Sequence record: NC_049850.1 | Strand: one strand, 5' to 3' | DNA: 64,000 bases | Shown here: positions 3,415 through 59,582 of the stretch, piece by piece | Layout of the letters: each line of letters opens with the position of its first letter | How positions within the stretch are numbered: position 1 is the first letter of the stretch | Made by a program: the position numbers and the translations under genes | The notes under the pieces: model-generated | Told to the model about the DNA's origin: nothing | Database searches by the model: none | The model's input: the letters and a program-made list of their open reading frames with translations, nothing else

Positions 3415-4521
3415 TTAATCTACAGGGATGAGATCGATCATCTTCTGGACGATGAAGAAGTGGTCGCTGTACATTTCCTTCGGGTCCAGCAGGCCGAGCG
3501 GCACCCACCGAACTTCCGCGAAGTCGTCGTCGGCCTTCACCTCGATCAGCTTCTCTGCGTCGTTCAGCAGGTACAGGTAGGCGTGCGTGACGATACGACC
3601 ACGCGTCTCGCCACGGTTCGGGTCCGAGAACACATGCTTGAATCGGAAAGCCAGCTTCATCGTGTCACGGCTCACCCGAATGCACGTCTCTTCGACAGCT
3701 TCACGGCACGAAGTGTTGAAGATGGTTTCGCCTGCGTGGGCAAACCCACCCGGCAGCGCCCACAGGCCCTTGCCCGGATTGAACTTGCGTCGCCCCAGCA
3801 GAACGTGGCCACTCTGGATGATCACCGAGTCTGCCGTCGTCATGATCGGCGCGTAGCTCTTGCCCTTGCCATCGCGACCACGGTAGCCGTGCTCTTTCAG
3901 ATACTCCTTCGAGAACTTGATCTCGGCGTTGAGCGCGTCGATCACGTCGAGGTGTGCCCAGCCCCAGTGTTTGAGATAGGATTTCACTTCCGGATGCACG
4001 AGTTCCGTGATATCCGTGATGCCCTGTTCCCAACATTGACCGCCACCGAACAACAGGTTGCGGACCGTCGTTGCGTCCAGCACTTCTCCGTTGACATTGA
4101 AACTGTTGACGCAGCGCGAATCCCACTGCGGGAACTTCTTCAGGTAGTAGGACGAGTCGTCCTTCGAGTGGCCGATCAATCGGACCTCGACCTCGTGACC
4201 GCCAGCCCGAATCATCTGCACGTAGCGGTCGACCTCGCGATGCACGGCCGCCATCCACTTGAAGTCGTTCTCGTGGAGGAAGTCGTCCAGCGTTTCGAAC
4301 GCGATCTTGCTCACATTCTCCTGCTCACCATAGACGGCGCGAAGCATGTCGATCACTTCGCATGCGGTCCACGGATTCTTGACGGTGCGCGGACGGTTTG
4401 CCGAGCCCACCAGAACCAACGTCAGGTCCGAGATCGCAAGACTCGTATCGATGATCTGCTGGTGGCCGAGGTGGAGAGGGCGAAAGCGGCCGATGAAGAC
4501 CGAAAGTTTCTTGATGCTCAT
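3415..4521 (-). CDS. bifunctional NMN adenylyltransferase / ADP-ribose Nudix hydrolase (NadM-Nudix, NatV-like)
   Basis: IGRFRPLHLGH (HxGH) N-domain; C-terminal Nudix box ALPGGF...REAVEET. Confidence 0.95.
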   Translation of the reverse strand: MSIKKLSVFIGRFRPLHLGHQQIIDTSLAISDLTLVLVGSANRPRTVKNPWTACEVIDMLRAVYGEQENVSKIAFETLDDFLHENDFKWMAAVHREVDRYVQMIRAGGHEVEVRLIGHSKDDSSYYLKKFPQWDSRCVNSFNVNGEVLDATTVRNLLFGGGQCWEQGITDITELVHPEVKSYLKHWGWAHLDVIDALNAEIKFSKEYLKEHGYRGRDGKGKSYAPIMTTADSVIIQSGHVLLGRRKFNPGKGLWALPGGFAHAGETIFNTSCREAVEETCIRVSRDTMKLAFRFKHVFSDPNRGETRGRIVTHAYLYLLNDAEKLIEVKADDDFAEVRWVPLGLLDPKEMYSDHFFIVQKMIDLIPVD

Positions 4522-12526: not shown

Positions 12527-12997
12527 TTACTCCTTGGTCGGGACAGCAGCCAGCGCAGTGCGCACCAGCGCGCTTGCCTGACGGCCATCGAACTTGCCGG
12601 TGTGGTTCGTGTTCAGAAACCCCATCAGCGAGCCGATATCGGCCCTGACGCCGGAATCCAGCGCGCCCTTGATCGCGGTCACGATTTCCGTCTGGCTCAT
12701 CTGTGCCGGGGCGTAGCGTTCGAGGACGATGCGCTCCTGAGCCAGTGTCGTGAGTTGGGCTGCACGCTCTGCGGTCAGGCCGTGCAGGTCGGCACCGATG
12801 GCTTCGCTCGTTTCCTTGTTGCGGTCCATGAACTTCTTGACCAGCGCTACGGTCTCGGCGTCCGTTGTCTGCTCACGCTGCTTGTTCTTGGCGATGGTAC
12901 TGGCTTCGCCCAGCAGCGTGGTCAGCAGCGTCGCTTCCACCGTGTTCTTGGCCTTGCGAGCCGCCACTTGGTCCTGCTTGATTTGTTCGATGAGCAT
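12527..12997 (-). CDS. GatB/YqeY domain protein
   Basis: IKQDQVAARKAK...TLLGE...LERYAPAQMS...IGSLMG...DGRQ. Confidence 0.85.
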   Translation of the reverse strand: MLIEQIKQDQVAARKAKNTVEATLLTTLLGEASTIAKNKQREQTTDAETVALVKKFMDRNKETSEAIGADLHGLTAERAAQLTTLAQERIVLERYAPAQMSQTEIVTAIKGALDSGVRADIGSLMGFLNTNHTGKFDGRQASALVRTALAAVPTKE

Positions 12998-13007
12998 GTT
13001 TTCTCCT

Positions 13008-14234
13008 TTAGCCCTTGATACACATGACTTGCTTGAGGGTGGCCACAACGTCGACCAGTTCCGACTGCGCTTCCATCACCGTGTCGATGTCCTTGTAGGC
13101 ACCCGGGATTTCGTCCAGAACACCACCGTCCTTACGGCACTCGACGCCCTTGGTTTGTTCCGCGAGGTCTTGCTCCGTGAACACCTTCTTGGCCTTCGTG
13201 CGGCTGAACTTGCGACCTGCGCCGTGCGAACACGAACAGTAGGCCGCCGTATGGCCCTTGCCACACACGATGAACGACTTCGCGCCCATCGAGCCCGGGA
13301 TGATCCCGAGTTGGCCCTTCTGGGCCGACACGGCACCCTTACGCGTCACCAGCATCGAACGGCCGTCGTGCACTTCTTGCGACAGGTAATTGTGGTGGCA
13401 GTTGATCGCCTGATCGACGAGCGTGAACGCCGGGAGCTTGCGGCGCAGTGCACGCAACGTCAACAGCAGCATGAAGTCGCGGTTGAGTCGTGCGTATTCC
13501 TGCGCCCACGACATGCCTTCCACGTACTCGTCGAACTCGGGCGTCCCGGCCTCGAACCACGCGAGGTCCTTGTCGGCCAGTTGCATGCCCTTGATCGAGG
13601 CATTGCGGGCAGCGAGTTCCGTCGAGATTTTCCCGATGATGTTGCCGATCCCGCGCGACCCCGAGTGCAGCATCACCCACACGTTCTGCTCGGTGTCGAC
13701 GCACAGTTCGATGAAGTGGTTGCCGTTGCCGAGCGTGCCCATCTGCTTTGGAAGCTTGGCCTCGTCGAACTTGCTGCCGATGCGCTGACGCACCTTCAGG
13801 CCGTCGAATCGCGCGAACAGGGCGTCGCGTGCTGCTTCCAGCGCACGACCCTCGTTCCCTTCGTGGAAGAAGCGGACTTCGCGCTTGTGCGTGTCGAAGC
13901 CGACCGGGACATCGCGCTCGATTTGAAGGCGCACGTCCCGGAGCGAGTCCGGAAGTTGGTGAGCCTTGAGCGAGGTCTTGACCGCACACATGCCGCAGCC
14001 GATGTCGACGCCTACCGCAGCCGGGATCACAGCCGCGTTCAGCGGGATCACGGAGCCGACAGTGGCACCGAGGCCAAAGTGCACGTCGGGCATGACGGCC
14101 ATCGGACCTGCCAAGATCGGTAGGTTCGTGATGTTCTGAATCTGCTTCAGCGCCTCCTGCTCGACTTCCATTTCACCGGTCCAGAAGCGGGCCTTACCGC
14201 CCATCATTTGGCCGTACAGTTCGTTCTGTTGCAT
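13008..14234 (-). CDS. rtcB: RtcB RNA ligase (3'-P/2',3'-cyclic-P to 5'-OH)
   Basis: MPDVHFG, GVDIGCG, GTLGNGNHFIE, LHSGSRG, HHNY, TRKGA, SHGAGR, DEIPGAYK. Confidence 0.96.
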   Translation of the reverse strand: MQQNELYGQMMGGKARFWTGEMEVEQEALKQIQNITNLPILAGPMAVMPDVHFGLGATVGSVIPLNAAVIPAAVGVDIGCGMCAVKTSLKAHQLPDSLRDVRLQIERDVPVGFDTHKREVRFFHEGNEGRALEAARDALFARFDGLKVRQRIGSKFDEAKLPKQMGTLGNGNHFIELCVDTEQNVWVMLHSGSRGIGNIIGKISTELAARNASIKGMQLADKDLAWFEAGTPEFDEYVEGMSWAQEYARLNRDFMLLLTLRALRRKLPAFTLVDQAINCHHNYLSQEVHDGRSMLVTRKGAVSAQKGQLGIIPGSMGAKSFIVCGKGHTAAYCSCSHGAGRKFSRTKAKKVFTEQDLAEQTKGVECRKDGGVLDEIPGAYKDIDTVMEAQSELVDVVATLKQVMCIKG

Positions 14235-14244
14235 ACTTCCCTCC

Positions 14245-14706
14245 TTACGAGTCTTGTTCGATTGCGCCCGAATACGCGTTCCGGACACCGATGCAGCGTG
14301 CGATGGCCGCCATGTCGTTACCCCAGTACTTCCCGTGGTCGATCATGTCGATCATGGGGTTCGTGGACCAGAAGATCGACGAGCACTTGTGGGGCTCACG
14401 GTTGACCGGAGCCTCACGGTCGATGACTGCTGCGTAGTACAGCATGATAAGGCCATCGCCCGAGATATGCGTGTCCGACGCGAAGTGCATGGCCATCAGG
14501 TCGGTGGCCCGTAGCTCAACGCCCACTTCCTCACGCACTTCGCGTATGATCGCGTCCTTCGGGTCTTCACCGTCCTCGATCACACCGCCCGGCAGCACGA
14601 AGAAATCGGAGCCCGGTTCCTTGATGCGGTGCTGTAGCAGCACGTCGCCAGTGGCGCGGTCGATCAGGACACAGGCTGCGCCCGCGATGTGCTTCGGAAT
14701 GGTCAT
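14245..14706 (-). CDS. Nudix hydrolase
   Basis: LPGGVIEDGEDPKDAIIREVREEVG. Confidence 0.9.
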   Translation of the reverse strand: MTIPKHIAGAACVLIDRATGDVLLQHRIKEPGSDFFVLPGGVIEDGEDPKDAIIREVREEVGVELRATDLMAMHFASDTHISGDGLIMLYYAAVIDREAPVNREPHKCSSIFWSTNPMIDMIDHGKYWGNDMAAIARCIGVRNAYSGAIEQDS

Positions 14707-24744: not shown

Positions 24745-25863
24745 TTACTCGCCGTGCTTCAGCAGGTAGCTGTTGCTGATGGCCTTGAACGAGAAGCCCG
24801 ATTCCGCGTGCTTGTACACCTTGCCTTCAGCGGGCTTGCCGTTGATGCCCTTGTGCTCGGCGCGGGCCAGCAGATCGGCCTTCGTCTTCGCGATGTCGTT
24901 CAGACGGAAGTGGCCACCGACCGGAACGTGCTTGATGCCGAGTTCCTGAGCCAGATGCTCGACCTGAACCGGCGTCATGTATTCCTGCGCGTCGATGTCC
25001 CACACGTCGTACAGGAAGAACGCGTGCGTGTCTGCCGGGAAGCCTTCGAAGTTCGACTGGATCGACGAACCGCACATTTCACCTTGAAGCGCGAGCGAGC
25101 GGCCGAGTGCTGCCGTCTTCTCCAGAAGTTGCTCCTGACGCGCAATGCGCCAGAACATGTTGTCTTCGGTCTCGACGAGATCGAGGTTGCGCGAGCACAC
25201 GCTTTGCACGAGTTCCGGAAGCGCACCGTTTTCGTCAGCCTTTGCAAAACCAGCAAAGTACGGGCTGCTCGGAAGCAGAGTGTACGCGGTCAGCGACGAG
25301 CCGTCCATCTTCGTCGTTTCTTGGAAGACCTCTTCGCCCCACTTCTCGAACAGATCGCGGATGTTCTGCACGCGCTCCTGATCGGTCTTCGGGATGAAGT
25401 GCGGGAAGTTGCCGCGTGCGGTGCCGCGCAGGTTCGCAGGGAGCACCTTTTCCCACTTGACGATGCCCAGCGTTTCCGTCAGATCGACTTCAGCGATCTG
25501 CTTGTCGGTCAGGTCGGCCGCGCGATACGTCTTGTCCTCGACGCTGAAGTCGCTCAGTTCGGGGTACAGCGACAGCGGGAGCAGCAGGCCCTGCGAGAGT
25601 TGGCCTTTCAGCTTCATCGACTTGATGCGGGCACCGCGCTTGCCCTCGAACGTGATGAAGCGCGGTTCGAGGAACGCATAGCGCTCGTCGTCGGCCGACA
25701 GGAACGAGTCGATTTCGAAATAGACGCCGATATCGCCCACCTTGAATTCACCCTTCTTGACGACGCATTGCCAGCCGTCGATGAGGGCGAGTTCGATGAG
25801 ATCGGCACCCGTGATCGGTTCGAGTGCGGTGACGCGACGGAACGTTGCGAGTTTGCGAGTCAT
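24745..25863 (-). CDS. ATP-dependent RNA ligase, Rnl2/DRB0094 family
   Basis: KLATFRRV...GADLIE...GWQCVVKKGEF...YFEIDS; TTKMDGSS; QGEM; EGKVYK; FKAISN. Confidence 0.92.
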   Translation of the reverse strand: MTRKLATFRRVTALEPITGADLIELALIDGWQCVVKKGEFKVGDIGVYFEIDSFLSADDERYAFLEPRFITFEGKRGARIKSMKLKGQLSQGLLLPLSLYPELSDFSVEDKTYRAADLTDKQIAEVDLTETLGIVKWEKVLPANLRGTARGNFPHFIPKTDQERVQNIRDLFEKWGEEVFQETTKMDGSSLTAYTLLPSSPYFAGFAKADENGALPELVQSVCSRNLDLVETEDNMFWRIARQEQLLEKTAALGRSLALQGEMCGSSIQSNFEGFPADTHAFFLYDVWDIDAQEYMTPVQVEHLAQELGIKHVPVGGHFRLNDIAKTKADLLARAEHKGINGKPAEGKVYKHAESGFSFKAISNSYLLKHGE

Positions 25864-54336: not shown

Positions 54337-54365
54337 TTGACGGTGTAGTAAAGACAGCGTATAGT
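54337..54365 (+). promoter_or_regulatory. tRNA-cluster promoter: sigma70 consensus with the phage motif in its spacer
   Basis: TTGACG-N17-TATAGT; GTAGTAAAGA at 54345-54354. Confidence 0.8.
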
Positions 54366-54374
54366 TCATGACTC

Positions 54375-54450
54375 GGGCTCCTAGCTTATTGGTTAGAAGC
54401 GTCCGGCTCATAACCGGTTGAAGAGGGTTCGATTCCCTCGGGGCCCACCA
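54375..54450 (+). tRNA. tRNA-CAT (Ile2 or Met)
   Basis: Cloverleaf, CTCATAA loop, GTTCGATTC, encoded CCA; C4:G69 favours Ile2. Confidence 0.9.
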
Positions 54451-54505
54451 ACAGAACAGGAGGCAATCATGAGTAGATTCTAGTGAACCAACTGGAGGTG
54501 TTCTC

Positions 54506-54793
54506 ATGAAAGCAAAAGCGTTTTACCATCGTGTTTGTAACTACGGCCCGGGCGGCTACCACTGCCCGTGCTGCGGTCCCGCACCAAGCATGCGCCGTAA
54601 GGAGCGTCAGCAACAACGACGCAAGTTCCATCGTCTGCTTGACGTTCTGGACAAGTTTGACACCGAAGTCAAAATCGAACACGACAATCTCGTGCTCGAC
54701 GATTTCGACGATGAGCGTCACGACTATTACAATGGCTGGGGCGGTGACCCTAGCCTGCACGATGAGTGGAAGGACTGGAAGAAGGCAGCTTGA
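54506..54793 (+). CDS. hypothetical protein with CPCC motif
   Basis: 95 aa, GGAGG RBS. Confidence 0.75.
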   Translation: MKAKAFYHRVCNYGPGGYHCPCCGPAPSMRRKERQQQRRKFHRLLDVLDKFDTEVKIEHDNLVLDDFDDERHDYYNGWGGDPSLHDEWKDWKKAA

Positions 54794-54857
54794 CCGTACT
54801 GCACCGCAAAGCCTTAGATGCGGTCTGCCGCGAGAACGTGAGCGGTGCAGTACACTT

Positions 54858-54943
54858 GCCCGGGTGGCGGAATTGCTAGACGCGACGGACTCAAAATCCG
54901 TTGGCCCTAGGCCGTGTGGGTTGGAGTCCCACCCCGGGCACCA
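54858..54943 (+). tRNA. tRNA-Leu(CAA)
   Basis: Long variable arm, CTCAAAA loop, CCA; T-loop variant TTGGAG. Confidence 0.92.
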
Positions 54944-54945
54944 TC

Positions 54946-55032
54946 GCGAGGATGGCGAAATTGGTAGACGCAGCAGGTTTAGGTCCTGCCGGTCGAAAGG
55001 CCGTGAGGGTTCGAATCCCTTTCCTCGCACCA
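54946..55032 (+). tRNA. tRNA-Leu(TAG)
   Basis: Long variable arm, TTTAGGT loop, GTTCGAATC, CCA. Confidence 0.95.
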
Positions 55033-55126
55033 CTTTGGATTGTAGGCGTAAATCGAGCGGGACTTCCCCACCTGCTCGATCAGGGCTGGTACACCTTATA
55101 GACCGTCGCCTACAATCCAAAGTGGT
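55029..55126 (+). ncRNA. candidate structured RNA (20-bp terminal stem with internal hairpins)
   Basis: ACCACTTTGGATTGTAGGCG / CGCCTACAATCCAAAGTGGT perfect inverted repeat. Confidence 0.55.
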
Positions 55127-55199
55127 TGTGGTAAAGATGTAGTGTGCTTTGCCTTTGAAGCGCGGGCGCTGTGGTTCTTAGGCCACGACAGCGCCCAAC

Positions 55200-55275
55200 G
55201 CCGGTTTAGCTCAGTTGGTAGAGCAGCGCCCTTGTAAAGCGCAGGTCACGGGTTCGAGCCCTGTAACCGGCACCA
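55200..55275 (+). tRNA. tRNA-Thr(TGT)
   Basis: Cloverleaf, CTTGTAA loop (C31.A39 mismatch), CCA. Confidence 0.92.
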
Positions 55276-55296
55276 CTAAACAATAACAATGAGGTT

Positions 55297-55638
55297 GTGA
55301 TGAATACGCATGAGGCTTACGAGATCGTCGATAGACTGACGCCTGTATCGGTCAGGAACCTCGAAGACGCGTACGTACGGTTCATGGAAATGGCGCTTCT
55401 GGTCGATCCACACCCGGAGACTGAAGACCGGGCCACACGGGATCGTGAGACATACACTGAATTCCTGCTACCGCCAGACGAGAATGGCAACCCCGTGATT
55501 TCGGTCCCGGGCATGCATCAGTTTCTGTCCAAGATCACGGGCCATCCGCTACAAACCTGTGTAGCCTTCGACTACGTTGACTTCCATCGCGTGCACGGCA
55601 CAACGATAGAGGACGCGGAACTCGCTGGCTACGTTTAA
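55297..55638 (+). CDS. hypothetical protein
   Basis: 113 aa, GAGG RBS. Confidence 0.75.
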   Translation: MMNTHEAYEIVDRLTPVSVRNLEDAYVRFMEMALLVDPHPETEDRATRDRETYTEFLLPPDENGNPVISVPGMHQFLSKITGHPLQTCVAFDYVDFHRVHGTTIEDAELAGYV

Positions 55639-55647
55639 GGACGCCCA

Positions 55648-55860
55648 ATGGAAGAAGACGCATACAGGTTCAGTGTGGCCGCGCTCAAGAGCGAGTACGA
55701 CGCTGAACTGCACGAACTGCGCAAGACAGTGCTTGAAGGTCGCGGTGACGTGGCGGGGTTTATCAAACTCAAGGAGTCGCTTGACTCAAGGCTGAAGGAC
55801 CGCGTTAGCGCGGTTACTGGCGCACGCAGTCAAACGCAGAACAAGCTGCTGTACAACTGA
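55648..55860 (+). CDS. hypothetical protein
   Basis: 70 aa. Confidence 0.7.
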   Translation: MEEDAYRFSVAALKSEYDAELHELRKTVLEGRGDVAGFIKLKESLDSRLKDRVSAVTGARSQTQNKLLYN

Positions 55861-55866
55861 ACAAGA

Positions 55867-55943
55867 CTCCGCTTAGCGCAGCCCGGTAGCGCACCTGATT
55901 TGGGATCAGGGGGTCGCAGGTTCGAATCCTGTAGCGGAGACCA
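55867..55943 (+). tRNA. tRNA-Pro(TGG)
   Basis: C1:G72, TTTGGGA loop, GTTCGAATC, CCA. Confidence 0.95.
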
Positions 55944-55961
55944 TACAACATAGGAGGTGTC

Positions 55962-56312
55962 TTGGAAACTACTTACGACTACAGCCTTACGTTCGACCTG
56001 ACTGACATCATCGTGTTCGTTCTGATCGCGATCATGATCAAGATGGTCATCGACATCGTGCGTGAGCGCATGCGAATACGCAGGCTCCGACGCGACATGG
56101 AGGCAAACGGCAATCTTCCGTGCATCACAATCTCGGGCAACGACGATGTGTCGATCTCGGGTCTTGTGTACGAAGGGCGGCCAATCCCCTCGGTCGATAT
56201 CAAGAACAAAGCGCTGTTCGTCGACGGTCAGTTCAAGCGCCGCCTCGCCCGCAATAGCCGTGTCTACAACCGTGGCATCGGCATCTTCGCGGACGGCAAG
56301 TACATGGGGTAA
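55962..56312 (+). CDS. membrane-anchored hypothetical protein
   Basis: AGGAGG RBS, TTG start, one TM helix. Confidence 0.7.
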   Translation: METTYDYSLTFDLTDIIVFVLIAIMIKMVIDIVRERMRIRRLRRDMEANGNLPCITISGNDDVSISGLVYEGRPIPSVDIKNKALFVDGQFKRRLARNSRVYNRGIGIFADGKYMG

Positions 56313-56316
56313 TACC

Positions 56317-56781
56317 ATGCGCAGCATCTTTCACATTTCGGTCGGCTCCGATAACTGGAACCCGACCGAGGCAGAACTTGCTGGCATCGTTCGCAAGTTC
56401 AAAGAACTGGAAGCAAAGCAGGGTCCGCGTCAGACGCTTCCCGATACACGCAAGATCATCCACATCAGTGTGGGTGCTGAGGACTGGACGCCTACCGCAG
56501 ACGAATTGCTGGCAATCGTTGAGCAGTTCCAGTGCGCGGACCTCGATCCGCTCGGTGGGTGGATTGCAACACGTCGAGGCGTCAACGTCACTGACATCGA
56601 GACCGCAGCACAGCCCACACTCGTGGTGAACGGAACGACCTACGAAAGTGCGGCCCGTGCTTCGCTACGTCAGGACTCCATCGACCGGCTTGAGGCCATC
56701 CGCGAAAACTTGCGTGCGTTCAAGCTGAGCACGCTCGATGTCGACACACTGATCAATAGGTTGTCGACGTATCAACTTTAA
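56317..56781 (+). CDS. hypothetical protein with a duplicated HISVG..W.PT..EL motif
   Basis: Two internal repeats; 154 aa. Confidence 0.75.
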   Translation: MRSIFHISVGSDNWNPTEAELAGIVRKFKELEAKQGPRQTLPDTRKIIHISVGAEDWTPTADELLAIVEQFQCADLDPLGGWIATRRGVNVTDIETAAQPTLVVNGTTYESAARASLRQDSIDRLEAIRENLRAFKLSTLDVDTLINRLSTYQL

Positions 56782-56802
56782 CCGAAAAGCTTAGGACAAC
56801 AA

Positions 56803-57225
56803 ATGAAACAACTCAACACGCAACGCCGCTTCGAATGCCTGACCACGGAAGGTACGTGGGTCTCCGTGCACTGGGAGCAACTGGAACCGGGCGACATGAT
56901 CCGCCTGCTCCCCGCTGTAGGCATCACCGAGGACGTGCCGCCGACCGATGTATTCGTCGTCATGGACACGCCGACCGTGAACGTGCGTTCGGTGAACGAA
57001 ATCCGTGCCGAACAAGCAGCCGCAGCGCAGCGTGAAGCGCTGGCCAACACGGAAGGCGTCGATGCTACCCAAGCGGCCCAGAGCGATGTCAACACGGCAG
57101 TCGACGCAGTGAACGCTGTCAAGGAGGCCGCTCGGGAAGCAGTGAAGGCCAAGAAGACTCCGAGCCCGAAGGTTCCGGCACCGGCCCGCAAGCCGCGCAC
57201 GCGCAAGGTCGCGACGCCGAAGTAA
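56803..57225 (+). CDS. hypothetical protein with a basic C-terminal tail
   Basis: 140 aa, AGGA RBS. Confidence 0.75.
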   Translation: MKQLNTQRRFECLTTEGTWVSVHWEQLEPGDMIRLLPAVGITEDVPPTDVFVVMDTPTVNVRSVNEIRAEQAAAAQREALANTEGVDATQAAQSDVNTAVDAVNAVKEAAREAVKAKKTPSPKVPAPARKPRTRKVATPK

Positions 57226-57337
57226 TTGCTGTGTAGTAAATACGTTGGGTGATAGCTGAAACGCAATCCCCAATTTGAGTTGTACAGAAAACGAGTGCTG
57301 GTTGCCGGATGCGGTTGTTACCCGGAACAGCACACGC

Positions 57338-57427
57338 GGATGGGTTCCCGAGCGGCTAAAGGGGGTGGACTGTAAATCCACCGGGCCTCAGTGTCCTACG
57401 TTGGTTCGAATCCAACTCCATCCACCA
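57338..57427 (+). tRNA. tRNA-Tyr(GTA)
   Basis: CTGTAAA loop, long variable arm, CCA. Confidence 0.95.
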
Positions 57428-57473
57428 GAACATAAGCAGGACCCCTGAACATCAGGGCAACAAGGAAAAAGCA

Positions 57474-57755
57474 ATGCCGATTAAGCCGCTGTATGACAAG
57501 GTGGTGGTGCGTACCACCGACACTGACCGTACGACTGTCGGGGGCATCGTGATCCCCGCTGCTTCGCTCAAGGCGAATCAGGCTGTCGTGGTTGCTGTCG
57601 GTGACGGCCACCTGATGCAAGATGGCACACTGCGACCGCTGTCCGTGAAGGTCGGTGACGTGGTGTATCTCTCGCACGAAGGCTCCGAGATCGAAGTCGA
57701 TGGCGAAAAGCTTCGCGTCTTCATCGAAGGCGATCTGATCGGAGTCCTCAACTAA
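57474..57755 (+). CDS. groES: co-chaperonin GroES
   Basis: IKPLYDKVVV...T.GGIVIP...VVAVGDG...VKVGDVV...G.EIEVDGE...E.DLIGV. Confidence 0.95.
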   Translation: MPIKPLYDKVVVRTTDTDRTTVGGIVIPAASLKANQAVVVAVGDGHLMQDGTLRPLSVKVGDVVYLSHEGSEIEVDGEKLRVFIEGDLIGVLN

Positions 57756-57764
57756 GCAGTACAT

Positions 57765-57840
57765 TCCGGGGTAGCTCAGTTGGTAGAGTAGGGGACTGTT
57801 AATCCCTTGGTCACTGGTTCGAACCCAGTCCCCGGAGCCA
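57765..57840 (+). tRNA. tRNA-Asn(GTT)
   Basis: CTGTTAA loop, G73, CCA. Confidence 0.95.
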
Positions 57841-57944
57841 GTAACGATCACCTGAAAGCGAAACTATGTCCACCAGTACTCATGCACTGACCTGCCGCTG
57901 ACTATTGGGTTGTGAATCAGACCATCAGGTGTTCTAAGCAGTAC

Positions 57945-58020
57945 GCGCGGGTAGCTCAGTTGGTAGAGCACCGGACTGAAAATCCGGGTGTCGCTGGTTC
58001 GAGTCCGGCCCTGCGCACCA
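57945..58020 (+). tRNA. tRNA-Phe(GAA)
   Basis: CTGAAAA loop, CCA. Confidence 0.95.
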
Positions 58021-58238
58021 GCGTTGTGATCGAGTGAAAATCGTAGGAAGGGGCCGATTACCCTGACCGCAATCTGTAGGTGGACCGGCTGGCCCTCATC
58101 CTGCTAGTGTAGATTTTTCCCATGTGGTTTCGATCAACTAATCATTGTGTGGTGTAGCGCACTCAATTAGACGGCCGGGCTCCGGAGCCCGCGTACCATA
58201 CCACCCCGGATGGAAACCGTTGAATAGTCCGGGTCGAT

Positions 58239-58315
58239 AGGGGTGTCGCCAAGCTGGTTAAGGCAACGGATTTTGATTCCGTCATGCGTAGGTTCGAATC
58301 CTACCGCCCCTTCCA
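58239..58315 (+). tRNA. tRNA-Gln(TTG)
   Basis: TTTTGAT loop, GCCAAG D-arm, CCA; discriminator U. Confidence 0.9.
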
Positions 58316-58392: not shown

Positions 58393-58719
58393 ATGAACGC
58401 AATCAAGAACGCGACTGCCACCACATTCGACGCTGATGTCATGAACGGTGACGGTCTCATCCTCGTCGATTTCTGGGCACCGTGGTGTGGCCCGTGCAAG
58501 ATGTTGGCTCCGACACTGGACAAGATATCGCAAGAGCGCGACGACCTCCAGATCGTGAAGGTAAACGTCGACGAAGAAGCAGAGAACGAAGTCGCAAAGA
58601 AGTTCGGAGTCCGTGGTATTCCGTCACTCATGCTCGTGCGGAACGGTGCAGTGATCGCGCAACGCGCTGGAGCACTCGCCAAGTCGCAACTGGAAGCATG
58701 GATCGACGCGAACAAGTAG
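58393..58719 (+). CDS. trxA: thioredoxin
   Basis: VDFWAPWCGPCK...VNVD...FGVRGIPSL. Confidence 0.95.
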   Translation: MNAIKNATATTFDADVMNGDGLILVDFWAPWCGPCKMLAPTLDKISQERDDLQIVKVNVDEEAENEVAKKFGVRGIPSLMLVRNGAVIAQRAGALAKSQLEAWIDANK

Positions 58720-58727
58720 CAAGCAGT

Positions 58728-58800
58728 CCTGAGTTAGCTTAGTGGCAAAGCAGCCGGGGTCCGGCGATGGACTACGGTTCGATTCCGTAACTCGGGGCCA
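58728..58800 (+). ncRNA. tRNA-like RNA lacking an anticodon loop
   Basis: 7-bp acceptor stem, U8A9, D arm with GG, TTCGATT T-loop, G73-CCA; anticodon arm is GCCGG-GGT-CCGGC. Confidence 0.8.
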
Positions 58801-58985
58801 AGATTTCTGCATCGTGGGCTGACCTCCACGGTGATCCGCTAGACGCGGAGGGTCACATCGGGGTATTGCACATGCCCGCTGGCGGTCACCAGCACCTCCT
58901 TGTCGCGCGACGACCGCGATTAATGGGCTACGTCGTATAAGTGGTTGGTTGTCCTGAGCGCACTAGGGCGTTCGGGGTAGTGCAG

Positions 58986-59029
58986 AAGGGTGATAGTCTG
59001 GGTAACCGGTCTATCACCCTTTTGTTTTT
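58986..59029 (+). terminator. strong terminator ending the tRNA/ncRNA cluster
   Basis: AAGGGTGATAG/CTATCACCCTT followed by TTGTTTTT. Confidence 0.85.
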
Positions 59030-59077
59030 GGTTCGTGTTATACTGGGTAGGTAGTAAATAACCAAAGGAGGTGTCAA

Positions 59078-59266
59078 ATGAAACAAGTGATGATATTGGC
59101 GTCCCTGTTTCTGGCAAGCCTCGTGCTCACAATCGAGTTGCGGCTACACCAGATACCGTACTCGGACCTCGTGATGACGGCGTACACGCTGATCTTCTTC
59201 GCGGTCTGGGCGATGATCGATTTCAAGGCCATGCGGAGGAAACAGGGTGACGGCAATTCGTATTGA
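59078..59266 (+). CDS. small membrane protein
   Basis: AAGGAGG RBS, two TM helices. Confidence 0.75.
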   Translation: MKQVMILASLFLASLVLTIELRLHQIPYSDLVMTAYTLIFFAVWAMIDFKAMRRKQGDGNSY

Positions 59267-59582
59267 ATTCTCGGTGCAGAACATCGGGAACGTGGTGCGC
59301 GAGGCACTGCGCAGCAACCACCGGGTGACCGGAATCTTGGTTCCGCGCAGGCTTGCCGACAAGATTTACGCGTATGTGAGGTCTGAGCAGGTGCCCGGAC
59401 CGGGCCATCCGCTGTACGACCTTTTCAACACTCTCGACGTGAACCACAAGATCGAGGATCGCGTGTACCAGTCGTTCGGTTGCATACTGGGAATCCCCAT
59501 GTACATCGAGCCGTGCATGGTGCCGGAAGAAATCAAGCTGGGAGAGTTCGAGGCGATCCTGTACACGACGGCGTTTGCGTAA
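59247..59582 (+). CDS. hypothetical protein
   Basis: 111 aa. Confidence 0.7.
   Translation: MTAIRIEFSVQNIGNVVREALRSNHRVTGILVPRRLADKIYAYVRSEQVPGPGHPLYDLFNTLDVNHKIEDRVYQSFGCILGIPMYIEPCMVPEEIKLGEFEAILYTTAFA

Follow-up and report, generated by a model that had tools for sequence, protein, structure and literature searches.

Anticodon-less tRNA-like RNAs

RNAs that keep the shape of a tRNA while lacking an anticodon are already known: the Y RNAs, the tRNA-like domain of tmRNA, mascRNA and pseudo-tRNAs belong here. In mascRNA/MEN-beta (MALAT1 3' end), as in the tRNA punctuation of mitochondria, a tRNA-shaped unit that RNase P and 3'-end enzymes excise defines the ends of the neighbouring RNAs; the anticodon arm of mascRNA/MEN-beta is reduced and non-decoding, the unit comes directly after a longer transcript, and the CCA of mascRNA is added post-transcriptionally. 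Murine gammaherpesvirus 68 encodes tRNA-shaped RNAs, the vtRNAs, that are processed but not aminoacylated and serve as a handle for expressing and processing the small RNAs that lie downstream. The tRNA-like domain of tmRNA has an acceptor stem, a T arm (with 'GGAC' right before the T stem) and CCA but no anticodon; its G3.U70 pair serves charging with alanine, and a long mRNA-like insert and pseudoknots separate the two acceptor strands.

The Y RNA YrlA (Rfam RF02553) mimics a tRNA: a T arm, a D arm and an acceptor-like stem are present, an anticodon loop is not. Its topology is permuted, with a loop closing the acceptor stem and both ends of the RNA lying in a long Ro60-binding helix at the place of the anticodon arm. 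The M. smegmatis YrlA, whose acceptor stem is 7 bp long, is cleaved by RNase P and acquires CCA in vivo, the missing anticodon loop notwithstanding (PMC4201824). Among the tRNA pseudogenes and tRNA fragments of prokaryotes and phages the decoding part is missing and gene finders are silent; the fragments on record mostly lack one end, and integration sites are a frequent place for them (PMC9897764). We found no description in the literature of a full-length, normal-topology, CCA-encoding phage tRNA body with a triloop-capped anticodon arm, nor of anticodon-less phage tRNA-like RNAs or tRNA decoys.

A tRNA body with a closed anticodon arm

An element that answers to that description is encoded by the Burkholderia jumbo phage BcepSaruman (MK552140 / NC_049850). 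The window analysed is a stretch of 64,000 nucleotides of this genome, and its coordinates, which are used throughout, are record coordinates minus 62000. The parts of the element are:

58728..58800, + strand: tRNA-like gene, 73 nt with encoded CCA; cloverleaf with shortened anticodon loop
58728-58734 and 58790-58796, + strand: acceptor stem, CCUGAGU with ACUCGGG, 7 of 7 positions paired, U3.G70
58737-58751, + strand: D arm, GCUU/AAGC, 4 bp, 7-nt loop AGUGGCA; preceded by U8 and A9
58753..58765, + strand: anticodon-arm substitute, GCCGG-GGU-CCGGC, all-G/C 5-bp stem with 3-nt loop; preceded by A26
58766..58772, + strand: variable region, GAUGGAC, 7 nt, 2 above the usual length; overlaps a competing hairpin
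58773-58789, + strand: T arm, UACGG-UUCGAUU-CCGUA, 5 bp, canonical TPsiC-type loop UUCGAUU
58797 and 58798-58800, + strand: G73 and CCA, read from the sequence

As parsed by script, the RNA reads CCUGAGU-UA-GCUU-AGUGGCA-AAGC-A-GCCGG-GGU-CCGGC-GAUGGAC-UACGG-UUCGAUU-CCGUA-ACUCGGG-G-CCA. All 21 of its base pairs are standard (one G.U among them), and the canonical residues of the elbow and core are in place: U8, A14, G15/C48, G18 G19, U54 U55 C56, A58 and G53-C61. The element is a compact class-I tRNA with a 7-nt D loop, its body falling about 1 nt short of the 71-nt compact phage tRNAs with an identical D arm. A previous reading of this DNA from its letters alone (the sequence-only reading) had listed the acceptor stem, D arm, T arm, G73, CCA and the 5-bp stem with its GGU loop, and our own reading and the script agree with it on every one of these. 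It had also stated that only the loop was lost. A simple 4-nt deletion, however, is not what the sequence shows: since the variable region exceeds the usual length by 2 nt, and the body is about 1 nt shorter, the arm has been remodelled rather than simply relieved of four loop nucleotides.

Where a tRNA has a 7-nt anticodon loop with U33, the element has GGU, and ARAGORN assigns no anticodon; to our knowledge a loop of 3 nt cannot present one. With the anticodon arm reduced to a closed 5-bp stem and a 3-nt loop, no codon can be read, and the element is thus a tRNA-derived RNA that is unable to decode. It is also unlikely to be aminoacylated, judging from the identity rules. Alanine identity requires G3.U70, serine a long variable arm and histidine G-1/C73, and the synthetases that look for G73 (Trp, Gln, Asn, Asp, Glu) depend on the anticodon. 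The element has the alanine determinant reversed (U3.G70) and lacks both the long variable arm for SerRS and the G-1/C73 for HisRS, and we know of no anticodon-independent identity set that the combination of C1-G72, U3.G70 and G73 would match.

Set beside the described systems, the element differs from each in its plan. Unlike YrlA it ends at its acceptor stem, has a triloop-capped anticodon stem and contains no GNCGAAG/Ro-binding helix, and the Rfam YrlA model finds no match in 58600-59100 at E values up to 10. It shares the 'GGAC' before the T stem with tmRNA, but its third pair is U3.G70 in place of G3.U70 and its 73 nt are contiguous; ARAGORN calls no tmRNA here. (The element and the RNA downstream of it were also considered jointly as a tmRNA or a Y RNA; Rfam lends this no support.) In contrast to the truncated tRNA fragments it is full-length, with every stem perfect, CCA kept and the loop alone missing. 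The vtRNAs come from an animal virus, with RNA polymerase III promoters and miRNAs downstream, and are unrelated in sequence; mascRNA and its like are eukaryotic or organellar and evolutionarily unrelated to the element, whose CCA is encoded. The processing of mascRNA-type RNAs is known; that of the element is predicted.

Detection and folding

Homology of the element to tRNA is more than chance. In a search of 501 nt the Rfam tRNA model RF00005, with its gathering score of 29, gives the element 41.0 bits (E 2.4e-7), and the sole part that fails to align is the middle of the anticodon arm. ARAGORN makes no tRNA call at the element, Rfam searches with speed filters drop it in both 8 kb and 64 kb of sequence, and it is annotated in neither GenBank record, that of BcepSaruman or that of its relative BcepSauron; elements of this kind are missed by standard annotation. 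The nine real tRNA genes of the cluster are likewise unannotated in both GenBank/RefSeq records.

The cloverleaf is computed at -25.4 kcal/mol and the minimum-energy fold, a non-cloverleaf in which the D and T arms are disrupted, at -28.0 kcal/mol. This difference is uninformative, because several genuine tRNAs of the cluster also lack a cloverleaf minimum. The 3' half of the short arm can also take part in a competing hairpin, GUCCG-GCGA-UGGAC at 58759-58772; this is worth -4.7 kcal/mol as written and -6.3 kcal/mol with an extra G.U pair, and the short arm (-7.0 kcal/mol as an isolated hairpin) is the stronger of the two.

BcepSauron (~94% identical overall) carries the element with a single change in 73 nt, C35 to U, which converts a G-C into a G.U pair and weakens the isolated short-arm hairpin to -4.8 kcal/mol. 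Two separately assembled genomes thus share the short loop and differ by a SNP inside the arm, and this excludes an assembly error; the worry, voiced in the sequence-only reading, that a 4-nt deletion had crept in at assembly is laid to rest by the pair-preserving SNP. The broader proposal that a sequencing or assembly error lies in a normal tRNA gene, or that a tRNA here decodes by unconventional means, is accordingly most improbable: adding 4 nt yields a tRNA whose variable region still measures 7 nt and whose isotype cannot be identified, and a 3-nt loop is, as far as we know, unable to present an anticodon.

The 3' end of the tRNA operon

The element is the last unit of the phage's single operon of tRNAs and small ORFs, and is followed by a structured RNA and a terminator:

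54337..54365, + strand: sigma-70-like promoter, TTGACG-17-TATAGT; ends 10 nt before tRNA-Met
54375..58315, + strand: nine tRNA genes (Met, Leu-CAA, Leu-UAG, Thr, Pro, Tyr, Asn, Phe, Gln) with small ORFs interleaved
58393..58719, + strand: thioredoxin gene gp212; stop codon 8 nt 5' of the element
58721..58727, + strand: 5' leader of the element, AAGCAGU, with U at -1; the AAGCAGU(AC) motif also precedes tRNA-Asn and tRNA-Phe
58801..58981, + strand: structured non-coding RNA between element and terminator, conserved in part in the outgroup phage
58952..58975, + strand: hairpin CCUGAGCGC-ACUAGG-GCGUUCGGG, then G; repeats the element's acceptor-stem sequence (GUCCUGAG ... UCGGGG)
58982..59036, + strand: intrinsic terminator, ~19 nt per arm, 84% complementary, then UUUUGUUUUU; closes the tRNA operon

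The nine tRNAs are all that the BcepSaruman genome encodes, and they stand in one cluster; the promoter upstream of tRNA-Met is the likely start of the operon. A spacing of 6-9 nt between the stop codon of an ORF and a tRNA recurs in the cluster, at gp207/tRNA-Pro, at GroES/tRNA-Asn and at thioredoxin/element, and is also seen at thioredoxin/tRNA-Pro of the outgroup.

Downstream of the element, 58801-59032 (232 nt; referred to below as the ~230-nt structured RNA) folds to -104 kcal/mol with a z score of -4.5 and matches no Rfam family. The block GGTATTGCACATGCC at 58862-58876 is identical in the outgroup locus L021, and alignment brings out more shared blocks and some compensatory pairs. (The same 15-mer, GGTATTGCACATGCC, gives 105 chance matches in IMG/VR, none of them homologous by BLAST.) This segment is probably a phage small RNA that is freed from the tRNA operon. 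The hairpin at 58952-58975 is missing from the outgroup phage and makes a weak, acceptor-only match of 5 bits to model R1; it could represent a duplicate with an internal deletion, or a mini-helix. The terminator is identified by inverted repeat I1 and by its fold, and has a conserved homologue in L021.

The slot of the element in related phages

Relatives were graded by their Dda-like helicase, the gene for which lies 1 kb downstream of the element. The nearest outgroup (helicase 84% identical; loci L021-L024) has a syntenic cluster of 13 tRNAs in the order Met, His, Leu, Leu, Gly, Thr, Pro, Ser, Tyr, Asn, Phe, Gln, Trp. Its normal tRNA-Trp(CCA) comes directly after tRNA-Gln and ~60 nt upstream of GGTATTGCACATGCC, so that the element of BcepSaruman occupies the tRNA-Trp slot, and a tRNA-shaped unit placed before the structured RNA is the ancestral layout. 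There is no tRNA-Trp anywhere in the BcepSaruman genome. A more distant relative, L014 (63% identity), has two tRNAs only, neither of them in the slot of the element.

Occupying the same slot does not amount to common descent. The element is 59% identical to the outgroup tRNA-Trp, which is the background level: against any tRNA of either phage it scores 55-67%, while most orthologous pairs reach 72-99% (the tRNA-Tyr pair, 65%). Descent from the outgroup tRNA-Trp, from tRNA-Pro (which shares C1-G72) or from tRNA-Gly was considered, and at 55-66% identity, again background, none of the three can be demonstrated as the origin. The sequence-only reading had taken a normal anticodon loop in relatives as a sign of assembly error or decay. 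A normal tRNA-Trp does stand in the slot of the nearest outgroup, which agrees with that expectation, but it is not a sequence orthologue of the element, and the outcome of the comparison is ambiguous.

The element may instead have arrived together with the thioredoxin gene and not have been retained from the ancestral cluster. Beyond BcepSauron, no homologue of this thioredoxin exceeds 58% identity among 5.8 billion proteins, the closest being cellular TrxA at 58%; on these protein comparisons the gene was shown to be specific to the Saruman/Sauron lineage. Kinship with a module of the outgroup in which a thioredoxin gene is followed by tRNA-Pro was rejected, the two thioredoxins being 44% identical and gp207 unrelated.

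No other copy or intact version of the element came to light in the viral, metagenome and genome collections searched. Specifically, its acceptor stem has 0 matches in JGI metagenomes and 0 in a set of one genome per prokaryotic species; a pattern of D arm plus T loop retrieves only unrelated tRNA-Lys and tRNA-Thr genes from viral contigs; the odd arm retrieves four chance matches, in GC-rich coding DNA; and the T arm with the 3' acceptor strand retrieves one, in a Methylomonas contig. A covariance model of the element finds no second copy in the whole phage genome, and covariance-model searches find no tRNA relics in BcepSaruman in the slots of the outgroup's His, Gly and Ser tRNAs. Degenerate tRNA relics are likewise missing from the rest of the cluster and of the genome.

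The closest outgroup (L021-L024; protein P0241) is found on >700 contigs, among them assemblies labelled Salmonella, Staphylococcus, Enterococcus, Listeria, Vibrio, Yersinia and E. coli. This spread looks like that of a laboratory or reagent contaminant or a spike-in, and not like a list of true hosts.

Divergence between BcepSaruman and BcepSauron

Genuine tRNAs differ at 0-18 positions between the two phages, and the element at 1. It lies in a tract, 58720-59270 (from the thioredoxin stop codon through gp213), that is ~98% identical at non-coding, synonymous and non-synonymous sites alike; for gp213, pS is 0.024 and pN 0.014, compared with a regional pS of 0.07-0.22. By its sequence the tract looks like a recently shared segment. 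With only two carrier genomes and ~98% identity at all classes of site, conservation of the element carries no weight, and that the lone C-to-U change keeps a pair has a chance expectation of roughly two in three. The assertion that the element appears selected rather than decayed therefore loses its footing: one substitution in 73 positions, in a tract of this kind, says nothing about constraint.

What the element may be for

Bacterial RNase P needs only a coaxial acceptor/T-arm helix, an elbow and a 3'-RCCA, and prefers U at -1. The reading that we favor, with a probability of about 0.4, is that the element is a non-decoding tRNA body, a predicted substrate of RNase P and 3'-end enzymes, that acts as processing punctuation. 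On this reading a single transcript would carry the tRNAs, the thioredoxin message, the element and the structured RNA after it. The element retains an undamaged acceptor/T-arm helix and elbow, a U at -1 and an encoded GCCA, and should for that reason still be recognized by RNase P and the 3'-end enzymes; RNase E and exonucleases would act at the encoded CCA, which AGAUUUCU follows. Excision would give the thioredoxin message its 3' end and the ~230-nt structured RNA its 5' end, and it is in setting the ends of both neighbouring RNAs that the element would be a tRNA-shaped punctuation mark. The freed 73-nt RNA would be a stable tRNA look-alike, probably uncharged.

Several observations speak for this reading: homology to tRNA and the integrity of everything outside the anticodon arm, presence in two genomes, the context of the operon with its 6-9 nt stop-to-tRNA layout and a leader shared with tRNA-Asn and tRNA-Phe, a tRNA in the same slot of the outgroup, the precedent of YrlA, and the persistence here of four perfectly paired stems, set against lost His, Gly and Ser slots that hold no relic. 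The layout is also that of mascRNA-type systems, the element beginning 8 nt past the thioredoxin stop codon, abutting the ~230-nt structured RNA and having a reduced anticodon arm. Against it count the non-cloverleaf minimum-energy fold and the lack of orthology with the outgroup tRNA-Trp. Moreover, punctuation by itself leaves the loss of the loop unexplained, since genuine tRNAs could do the same job.

Only slightly less likely, in our view, is a recent pseudogene: a tRNA, native to the slot or acquired along with the thioredoxin gene, would have lost its anticodon loop before BcepSaruman and BcepSauron parted and be too young to have decayed, any processing being inconsequential. An essential part is gone; the element is confined to two genomes in which it differs at 1 of 73 nt, within a tract of very low divergence (the pS and pN of gp213 given above); the 9 tRNAs of this lineage, compared with 13 in the nearest outgroup, fit an ongoing loss of tRNAs; and neither a second copy in the phage genome nor a copy or similar family in the viral, metagenome and genome collections attests to wider use. 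What fits less well is the manner of the loss. A lone 4-nt deletion does not account for a variable region that has gained 2 nt or for a new arm that pairs perfectly as an all-G/C helix; the full set of 21 base pairs and every nucleotide engaged in tertiary interactions have been kept, and the slots in which tRNAs were lost relative to the outgroup hold no relic at all. Once processed, a CCA-bearing, L-shaped RNA could also act away from the ribosome, as a decoy or sponge for host immune effectors that recognize the tRNA elbow, acceptor stem or CCA end, or as a partner or regulator of the phage's own tRNA-repair enzymes. We consider such action in trans unlikely. The sequence-only reading had put forward a toxin decoy, modulation of RelA-type sensing and the donation of amino acids outside translation, conjectures to which the present evidence lends no support. 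The evidence that bears on it comes from the following features:

12527-14706, - strand: genes for a YqeY-like protein, RtcB and a NUDIX hydrolase, side by side (Pfam matches)
24745-25863, - strand: gene for an Rnl2-like RNA ligase, 10 kb from the RtcB cluster (Pfam match)
L135 4567-4655, L136 7635-7767 and L134 about 4262-4350: YrlA-like Y RNAs of distant relatives, in the non-coding stretch that immediately precedes the helicase gene

An Rnl1-like ligase, an RlaP nucleotidyltransferase and a Thg1-like protein are encoded outside the window (loci L012 and L013), and this heavy investment in tRNA repair (Pfam matches and annotation; PMC7824862) implies pressure from defences that target tRNA; an RNA without an anticodon loop would be expected to escape anticodon nucleases. 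The distant relatives (helicases of L135, L136 and L134 51-62% identical) have, in the equivalent region upstream of the helicase gene, RNAs with a T arm, a loop-closed 7-bp acceptor-like stem and a D arm, L135 also encoding GCCA; the Rfam YrlA model scores those of L135 and L136 at 32-34 bits (E about 1e-5 to 4e-5), below gathering, and that of L134 was recognized by eye only. Their existence indicates that this group of phages uses anticodon-less tRNA mimics. The element itself, however, is ~48% identical to these YrlA-like modules by hand alignment, which establishes no specific relation, and it has no family of similar elements in other phages. Nor does any binding partner, toxin target or co-varying gene come into view: the repair kit connects no defence to the element, and no TROVE/Ro60 domain is found among ten large hypothetical proteins. 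A more particular version, in which an anticodon-less CCA mimic of normal topology stands as the counterpart of YrlA and misleads host effectors or serves RtcB, YqeY, Thg1 and RlaP, is less likely again.

The gene gp266, annotated 'RNA ligase' (L011 42068-42580; record 168068-168580), matches Pfam Acb1, the anti-CBASS phosphodiesterase, at E 1.4e-15, a better match than that to the 2'-5' RNA ligase family.

Phage tRNAs are now largely viewed as counter-measures to host nucleases that cut tRNA. The element is known from one shallow lineage; if functional, a tRNA body stripped of just the part on which nucleases act and the ribosome depends would add a new kind of player to the conflict between phage and host. 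The more modest reading, processing punctuation, would if true furnish a case from a bacterial virus of the tRNA-shaped punctuation that is better known from mitochondria and MALAT1.

Minor features of the cluster

The motif AAGCAGTAC (one mismatch allowed) adjoins or follows five units of the cluster, at 57434, 57754, 57936, 58319 and 58721, and stands directly 5' of tRNA-Asn, tRNA-Phe and the tRNA-like element; a similar sequence, AAGCAGAAC, stands before tRNA-Ser in L021. It may be a processing signal within the cluster. A genome-wide excess of AAGCAGTAC was considered as a signal and set aside, the occurrences outside the cluster being mostly in-frame Lys-Gln-Tyr codons, and only those in the cluster are meaningful.

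Two further differences separate the clusters of the two phages. In BcepSauron an HNH endonuclease gene stands between the two tRNA-Leu genes, and tRNA-Met differs at 18 of 76 positions from its BcepSaruman counterpart, which suggests replacement of the allele.
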